DNA of 56,682 nucleotides, counting the filler, from Platydemus manokwari (Eukaryota): the NCBI GenBank assembly GCA_037951405.1. It is 5 parts of 5 records of this genome, joined end to end, with 100 filler letters (N's around TTAATTAATTAA, not from the genome) between each part and the next. Parts side by side here need not be neighbours in the genome. Positions count along the whole stretch, not along the records: positions 11,402 to 20,333 come from JBBMOY011327206.1; 4 more parts are not named here. One strand, 5' to 3'. The notes beneath the pieces are model-generated. The model was not told where the DNA came from. It made no database searches and saw only the letters and a list, made by a program, of their open reading frames with translations. A program made the position numbers and the translations under genes. The number at the start of each line of letters is the position of its first letter. The first letter of the stretch is position 1. Positions 16,818-17,598 of this stretch are shown piece by piece.

Positions 16818-17598
16818 ATGACTTACATGTGTAGAATTGTATTAATAACATTTTTTATTGCAGTTTCAAATTCTGATATTTTTGAAGTCTATACAAAACT
16901 TTGTGGAGATATAAATTGCCATATCGAACACGAAGGTAATTTCATGAATTATCATAATCCATTTATTATCACTAGCTAAGTTATTACTTTGTTTCTAAAC
17001 TAATTCTAAATATTAATTTTTCTAGTCGTTTCTCATTATGTAGAATCGTTATTTAATTAAGTCGATTTCAATAAAGAATAAAGCATAGTTTTAATGTTGG
17101 TGTTTTGTTGATATTGTTTATCAGACTTAGGGAAAATCAGATTTTAAAAATTGATGTTCATGTTTAGTGTTCAATGTAAAATAAATAAAAATTAGAAAAT
17201 AATCGAATTATTAATTAATGCTGTTTTATGCATTATTATTATCATCATTGGTATTAAAATTAATGATTATTATTAACATTGCTACCTTTATTAATATTAA
17301 TGTTAACATTATTTTCGTCATTTTAATATTTTTATCCTTATTATTATTATTATCGTTACGATTAATATTATATTTATAAAAAATTTGTTATTATCATTAT
17401 CATTGTTATTGACAAATTATAATAATTCATTTTTATACTTCAGTTGCTAAATATTTTGTGACCCCAGTGTGCTGTGATGGCATTATTCCTAAATGTTGTT
17501 ATAATTTAACGACTTTGTCAAAAATTTTGATAGGAGTGGTAGCTGGAGTAATTGTTTTATCAATAATTATAACCATTGCATGTTGCTGCTGCTGCTAG
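16818..17598 (+). CDS. Small cysteine-rich single-pass membrane protein (Shisa-like/STMC6 architecture), 90 aa, two exons
   Basis: Exon 1 16818-16935 (AAAAATG context, ends G|gtaatt) and exon 2 17444-17598 (ttcag|). Protein: MTYMCRIVLITFFIAVSNS-DIFEVYTKLCGDINCHIEHEVAKYFVTPVCCDGIIPKCCYNLTTLSK-ILIGVVAGVIVLSIIITIA-CCCCC*. It has a signal peptide, C-C-CC-CC, a TM helix and a poly-Cys end. Confidence 0.8.

Follow-up and report, generated by a model that had tools for sequence, protein, structure and literature searches.

A two-exon gene, supported by homology, for a 90-residue, nearly tail-less membrane microprotein in Platydemus manokwari, a probable distant relative of DUF2650 and Shisa-like proteins

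The window, that is the whole 56,682-nucleotide stretch of Platydemus manokwari DNA that was analysed, consists of five parts joined end to end, and the locus described here lies on the plus strand of the part taken from record JBBMOY011327206.1 (positions 11402-20333, 28% GC). Read from the sequence, a two-exon frame opens with an ATG at 16818 and closes with a TAG at 17596-17598. The coding part of exon 1 (16818..16935, plus strand) begins at Met1 and takes in 39 whole codons and the first base of codon 40, 118 nt in all. It encodes the signal-like peptide, then the first two of the conserved cysteines (K-L-C-G-x3-C), and is followed by a donor reading G/GTAATT, with the GT at 16936. The intron (16936..17443, plus strand) is 508 nt long and of the GT..AG type; its 3′ end at 17443 reads TTTTATACTTCAG just before the exon border, the acceptor being made of a pyrimidine tract and then CAG. 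The coding part of exon 2, stop included (17444..17598, plus strand), encodes CC-x6-CC, the juxtamembrane stretch Y-x-L-T-x-LSKILIG, the membrane helix and CCCCC, and its last codons are TGT TGC TGC TGC TGC TAG. Splicing of 16935 to 17444 would join the two parts in phase 1 into a CDS of 273 nt, coding for 90 residues. The earlier note had proposed an intact two-exon frame with canonical, phase-matched splice sites, and this is what is found, with homology meeting at the junction (see below). It had also explained why the ORF track is blank at this place, rightly so: taken as mechanical ORFs, exons 1 and 2 give 53 and 46 aa, below the 60-aa cut.

GC content is 0.27 in exon 1, 0.34 in exon 2 and about 0.25 in the flanks, and falls to 0.19 (19%) in the intron, whose core is degenerate, ATT-rich and of low complexity. 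Within this core, Tandem Repeats Finder (TRF) reports for the tract 17232-17410 a period of 3, with 60 copies and 56% matches, as well as sub-repeats of 18 nt. Over 17299-17392, short Logan contigs of high depth accumulate in large number, which means that the intron motif is repeated across the genome. Two hexamers flank the frame: a TATAAT at 16775-16780, 38 nt before the ATG, as a possible core promoter, and an AATAAA at 17710..17715 on the plus strand, 112 nt past the stop, as a weak candidate polyadenylation signal. At 28% GC, either hexamer occurs often by chance.

The 90-residue product would consist, in order, of a signal-like N-terminus, six ectodomain cysteines, a membrane helix, CCCCC and the stop. 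Cysteines occupy positions 5, 29, 34, 49, 50, 57, 58 and 86-90, that is 12 of the 90 residues, and those of the ectodomain are spaced C-x4-C-x14-CC-x6-CC. By hydropathy, the protein has a hydrophobic segment at about residues 4-25 and another at about 64-89, and every homologue shows equivalent peaks. The predicted signal peptide (16818..16874, plus strand; residues 1-19) has IVLITFFIAV as its core, and S-N-S precedes the predicted cut, so that hydropathy and the small residues at -3/-1 both point to cleavage there. The predicted transmembrane helix (17524..17580, plus strand; residues 67-85) has a Kyte-Doolittle 19-residue mean of 3.0, and AlphaFold2 places a helix at 63-88, with a pLDDT of about 72; a GVVAG lies inside the hydrophobic segment at about 67-85. 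It is followed by the C-terminal cysteine cluster (17581..17595, plus strand; residues 86-90), a presumed palmitoylation site that would lie on the cytosolic face of the membrane. The 19-aa signal peptide that had been noticed earlier thus holds at the level of sequence, its N-terminal layout being common to the homologues in the alignment presented below, and the six-cysteine ectodomain, membrane segment, five cysteines and stop are as first described.

Upstream of the gene, on the minus strand, the region 14400-15750 stands out by its GC content (0.36-0.38, versus 0.25-0.29 around it) and holds charged, non-hydrophobic frames broken by stops and frame changes. One of these frames, at 15202-15498, gives faint Pfam matches to CNOT1_TTP_bind (E 0.002-0.004) and to Retrotrans_gag (E 0.018). 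We considered that the window gene might lie antisense inside a CNOT1 gene, and rejected it: the CNOT1_TTP_bind and Retrotrans_gag matches compete for the same broken frame, and CNOT1 has support from no other. A look for long repeats flanking 14400-15750 gave none, and the region holds either the decayed gag of a retroelement or exons of another gene. Within the 8.9-kb piece, no paralogue of the window gene was detected.

The letters of the locus were verified with a Logan contig of 2863 nt, built from the only public run that holds this stretch. Over 16500-17900 it shows no difference from the assembly, intron included, which confirms the sequence down to the TGC run and the TAG, and says nothing on expression. 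This run carries the intron at full word share, which identifies it as DNA, and it is probably the assembly's own source. The exact window protein was absent from a collection of 15 billion proteins, and a word-index search with it returned nothing. Exact look-ups in assemblies returned no nucleotide contig for the exon 1 ORF, nor for the three Schmidtea mediterranea homologues P0001, P0002 and P0004 described next.

Homologues were found by an exhaustive phmmer search of 1.84 billion representative proteins. The best, P0001, is 90 aa long and matched with E = 2.9e-17, residues 3-89 of the query facing its residues 3-89; P0002 (100 aa) followed with E = 6.8e-12. P0001 is in the indexed collection and has an exact word of 8 residues, LSKILIGV, in common with the window protein, yet the word-index search with this protein as sole query missed it; when the family alignment was used as query, that search returned the two known clusters only. 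As the exhaustive search alone found P0001, a blank word search on short hydrophobic proteins cannot be read as absence. A third phmmer match, P0003 (548 aa, E = 3.6e-06), was rejected as a homologue: it is repetitive, and its six short matched stretches include none of the cysteines. P0003 is an internally repeated protein, with units containing LSPDLSLRTLAKLAPGFMAGDL, and a false positive driven by repetition.

Each exon was then considered on its own. Exon 2 alone matched P0001 in BLASTP with 67% identity (E 2e-20). Exon 1 aligned locally to the N-termini of P0001 and P0002 with scores of 47 and 44, respectively, compared to 19 +/- 4 for shuffles, and, of the 31 ATG..GT candidates of compatible phase within 6 kb upstream, it ranked best. 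Independently of the gene model first proposed, the three S. mediterranea proteins alone, without the window protein, served to build a profile that was run against the 575 open frames of the whole piece. The frame of exon 2 ranked highest, with E 1.4e-18 over profile positions 42-93, followed by that of exon 1, with E 0.02 over positions 2-42; every other frame had an E value of 0.9 or more. The two matches are collinear and abut where the splice junction was proposed, at profile position 42. There, the alignment is ungapped, the window protein reading E-V-A where the homologues read E-I-A and K-I-A. The intron junction is thus placed by homology, given that the profile match changes frame at position 42 and that the alignment runs through it without a gap. 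We conclude that homology supports the two-exon frame as a real protein-coding gene, unannotated in the protein collections searched.

The homologues belong to a small planarian family. P0004, which falls in the same cluster as P0002, is AHD24732.1 (UniProt V9XQP2), named "1.C3.2 [Schmidtea mediterranea]". P0002 is the genome-derived form of 1.C3.2 and is near-identical to P0004, and P0001 (UniParc UPI0005FF63A1) is a 90-aa S. mediterranea paralogue. P0002 and P0004 differ from each other at two residues, L/S after the second cysteine and C/G inside the membrane helix, probably as a result of strain or allele variation. The window protein was aligned with these three (alignment A1, four sequences). 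Its identity to the homologues is 45-47% in A1, and 49-51% over the stretches matched by phmmer. Thirty-one columns are invariant, among them C29, G30, C34, A41, F44, P47, C49, C50, C57, C58, Y59, L61 and T62, as well as the runs LSKILIG (64-70) and IACCCC (84-89). All six ectodomain cysteines are therefore kept in the four sequences, contrary to what would be expected had the homologues lacked the pattern, and with the significant full-length similarity, LSKILIG and IACCCC they place the window protein in the 1.C3.2-like family. It is not the ectodomain loops that are best conserved but the second CC pair, the residues next to the membrane, the helix and the CCCC at the end, whose cysteines 86-89 are the same in 4/4 sequences; the membrane helix ranks first in conservation across the family. 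The GxxxG motif proposed in the earlier note is present in the window protein (GVVAG), P0001 and P0004, whereas P0002 reads GCIVIG, so that the motif is no family invariant; it is the G of P0004 at the second variable residue that restores it.

The end of the protein deserves attention, as reading of orthologues through the TAG into a long tail had been raised as the sign of a nonsense allele in this copy. After the helix, the window protein ends with CCCCC, P0001 with CCCCR, and P0002 and P0004 with CCCCSNNRRRY, which leaves 1, 1 and 7 residues, respectively, after CCCC. None reads into a long tail, so the near absence of a cytoplasmic tail characterises the family, and this copy is no nonsense allele. 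That every family-invariant residue survives at only 45-47% identity speaks for purifying selection and against decay of this copy. The divergence is too large for the same gene in the same species; the window gene is therefore either a further paralogue of the S. mediterranea members or their orthologue in another planarian.

The proposal of an undescribed, lineage-specific family did not hold entirely. AHD24732.1 was deposited in GenBank in 2013, and the family likely has relatives of about 100 aa, apparently nearly tail-less, in the nematode DUF2650 proteins. The window gene adds to an existing but little-studied family, and is not a new kind of protein. A literature search found no publication on "1.C3.2" or its accession numbers, nor on Shisa-like proteins in Schmidtea, and another on DUF2650 found nothing.

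Wider relationships were sought with Pfam. For the homologues the top match was DUF2650 (PF10853), with E = 0.045 for P0002 and E = 0.0063 for P0004 (0.0036 without the signal peptide). These correspond to 13.9-15.2 bits for P0002 and 16.6-17.4 bits for P0004, below the gathering threshold of 22.9. The matched part is CC-x6-CC with the juxtamembrane stretch, facing positions 5-26 of the 37 in the profile. CYYR1 came second for the homologues, also below the gathering cut-off (E 0.19-4.3). With the full-length window protein, no DUF2650 or STMC6-family match was obtained at E <= 10, Protocadherin and MIF4G appearing at E of about 0.1; exon 2 alone matched CYYR1 with E = 3.1. P0001 gave no STMC6-family match, and Shisa_N and WBP-1 were absent from all Pfam scans.

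ESM language-model features and Atlas structures, which count as one source, point in the same direction. Nematode DUF2650 clusters occupied the top three feature rows for each of three queries, with similarities of 0.95, 0.93 and 0.92 for P0002, and 0.94, 0.92 and 0.90 for P0001. Between 182 and 210 of the 256 features were shared with these clusters, the best values being 210 for P0002 and 202 for P0001. The Atlas model of P0001 superposed on the top DUF2650 cluster with TM scores of 0.74/0.67 over 86 residues, the next row being at 0.46. The Atlas adds the warning that no more than 4 of the 10 best named matches share the top family, though only four such clusters seem to exist. Exon 2 alone gave feature similarities of 0.84 to DUF2650, 0.80 to CYYR1 and 0.77 to Shisa_N, which were rated a lead only. 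An AlphaFold2 model of the window protein, made from a shallow alignment and poor overall (pLDDT 56.8), contains a hairpin at 45-61 besides the 63-88 helix. Searches of the PDB by sequence, and by Foldseek with this low-confidence model, returned only chance winged-helix rows.

Three other explanations of these data have to be weighed. That the frame arose by chance in AT-rich DNA is highly improbable. At 28% GC, Ile-, Leu- and Phe-rich "signal peptides" and "membrane helices" are indeed common in random frames; such frames do not, however, produce a phmmer homologue match that spans both exons, nor a profile that lands on the two exon frames and on no other, and 12 cysteines in 90 residues, against a background of 3% in the six-frame translation of the piece, have a probability of 1.5e-5. 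Given the phmmer homologues and the collinear profile match, a chance frame is refuted in practice. Somewhat less improbable, and still quite unlikely, is that this copy is a paralogue which is silent or was inactivated recently, with an intact sequence but no expression. The 15-billion-protein collection does not contain this exact protein, and nothing shows a promoter. No RNA run holds the stretch either, but none exists for this organism, so this is not evidence of silence. Against such a copy, start, stop and the two splice sites are intact and all family-invariant residues are kept, and neutral decay over a distance of 45-47% identity would not spare them.

The last alternative bears on the wider relationships only, and we regard it as unlikely, if more serious than the two preceding ones. 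The planarian family would be real but unrelated to STMC6 and DUF2650, an independently evolved, small disulfide-rich protein with a single membrane pass, a pattern that is easy to arrive at. Cysteine pairs next to a membrane helix could draw Pfam, feature and structure searches to the same families without common descent. It fits this explanation that all Pfam matches are below threshold, that P0001 and the full-length window protein match no STMC6 family, the sole such match for the window being CYYR1 with exon 2 alone, and that the PY tail and the juxtamembrane aromatic motif of STMC6 proteins (PMC6125347) are absent; the Atlas caveats go the same way. On the other hand, hmmscan (E 0.0036), the features (0.95, 210 shared) and the Atlas structure (TM 0.74 versus 0.46) all put the same rare family, DUF2650, first of about 25,000, and size agrees as well, 90-100 aa compared to 100-101 aa in DUF2650.

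On balance, then, we favour a functional gene for a 90-residue type I membrane microprotein of the small planarian 1.C3.2 family, acting as a tail-less adaptor or auxiliary subunit and distantly related to DUF2650 and STMC6; taken as a whole, this account seems likely, with some reserve. The signal peptide would be cut after about residue 19, and the luminal or extracellular part, of some 47 residues, would fold around three disulfides formed by the six invariant cysteines. The invariant juxtamembrane and membrane segment (Y-x-L-T-x-LSKILIG ... IA) may make sequence-specific contacts with a partner membrane protein. Juxtamembrane cysteines are commonly S-palmitoylated, and acylation of the four to five cysteines at the cytosolic end of the helix would fix and sort the protein in the membrane. 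A cytosolic C-terminus, hence type I topology, is suggested by the basic residues that follow CCCC in the homologues, combined with the positive-inside rule. C-terminal prenylation, of the CaaX or Rab-type CC kind, was also envisaged for the terminal cysteines and rejected as unlikely: the homologues end in R and SNNRRRY, and the distance from the cysteines to the C-terminus is not conserved. Lacking a cytoplasmic tail, the protein would not recruit NEDD4-type ligases via PY motifs, unlike WBP1 and CYYR1. For CYYR1, WW-domain binding and WWP1 turnover operate via PPxY (PMC11399591), and this PPxY-WW mechanism cannot operate in the window protein, as there is no tail to carry it. Its most likely role would be that of a small membrane adaptor or auxiliary subunit acting through ectodomain and helix.

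A bolder version of this account is that the planarian family is a hitherto unrecognised branch of DUF2650/STMC6 reduced to a disulfide-knotted stub, an unusually conserved helix and a poly-Cys acylation site, and serves solely as in-membrane or luminal partner, or chaperone, of a receptor or channel, devoid of any tail to recruit ligases. We hold it as tentative, and somewhat doubtful. Concentration of the conservation in the helix and terminal CCCC points to an in-membrane partner and to acylation. If true, it would provide the first testable functional model for the nematode DUF2650 proteins, and the family would reach beyond nematodes. Planarian RNAi and in situ hybridisation are easy, which makes the family tractable for the study of tail-less STMC6-like microproteins. 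In itself the advance is modest, the discovery of a small gene and a link across phyla, with no new principle. A gene made of two exons of less than 60 codons, invisible to ORF tracks and absent from the searched protein collections, appears to be real and under constraint, and a planarian cDNA of uncharacterised function, "1.C3.2", is probably linked by its sequence to nematode DUF2650 and to the Shisa-like cysteine pattern.

It remains to compare the window protein with the systems that resemble it. LAT-type palmitoylated transmembrane adaptors have a short outer part, one helix and cysteines acylated at the cytosolic end, which steer membrane sorting; their signalling goes through long cytoplasmic tails rich in Tyr, and an ectodomain is almost absent. 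The juxtamembrane cysteines are shared with the window protein, but the layout is reversed, and no homology is claimed. The closest likeness is to 1.C3.2 and P0001, in the signal peptide, C-x4-C ... CC-x6-CC, LSKILIG, IACCCC and a stop at most 7 residues past CCCC, P0001 having also the same length of 90 aa. The window copy differs from them by a fifth terminal cysteine, a cysteine in the signal peptide and an N-L-T sequon (60-62), all of which are found in this copy only. DUF2650 comes next. It groups nematode proteins of about 100 aa (100-101 aa in the clusters) and of uncharacterised function, close in size to the 90-100 aa planarian proteins, and, judging from this length, may also have almost no tail; it differs in belonging to another phylum, and the match attains 14-17 bits, against the 22.9 required. 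Pei and Grishin, in 2012, reportedly counted DUF2650 among the STMC6 families.

The STMC6/Shisa-like superfamily (Shisa, WBP1, WBP1L, VOPP1, TMEM92, CYYR1) is attributed to Pei and Grishin 2012 where that work is cited in PMC6125347, PMC5578492 and PMC11399591. STMC6 designates single-transmembrane proteins with six conserved cysteines and a proline-rich, PY-bearing C-terminal region (PMC6125347, PMC11399591); most Shisa-like proteins have six cysteines in a C*C*CC*CC pattern (PMC5578492), the PY motifs are PPxY or LPxY, and an aromatic juxtamembrane motif, WY, WF or IW, is present in STMC6 proteins (PMC6125347). The Shisa-like reading put forward in the earlier note stands in part. The window protein resembles this superfamily by its signal peptide, its single membrane helix and the cysteines in or just after the helix; C29, C34, C49, C50, C57 and C58, invariant in A1, follow the C*C*CC*CC order, and the hydropathy peaks at 4-25 and 64-89 and the predicted helix at 63-88 agree with a single-pass type I layout. 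What does not carry over is the proline-rich tail with its PY motif, there being no proline after residue 55, and the Trp juxtamembrane motif, as none of the four proteins contains a tryptophan and only Tyr59, after the second CC, is conserved; nor does the planarian family match Shisa_N, WBP-1 or CYYR1 significantly, the Pfam scores staying below threshold. With these differences taken into account, we consider a relation to the STMC6 superfamily probable, but do not class the window protein as a member. It has the STMC6 ectodomain-plus-helix layout and is most likely a distant relative of DUF2650, and probably related through DUF2650 to the STMC6/Shisa-like proteins.
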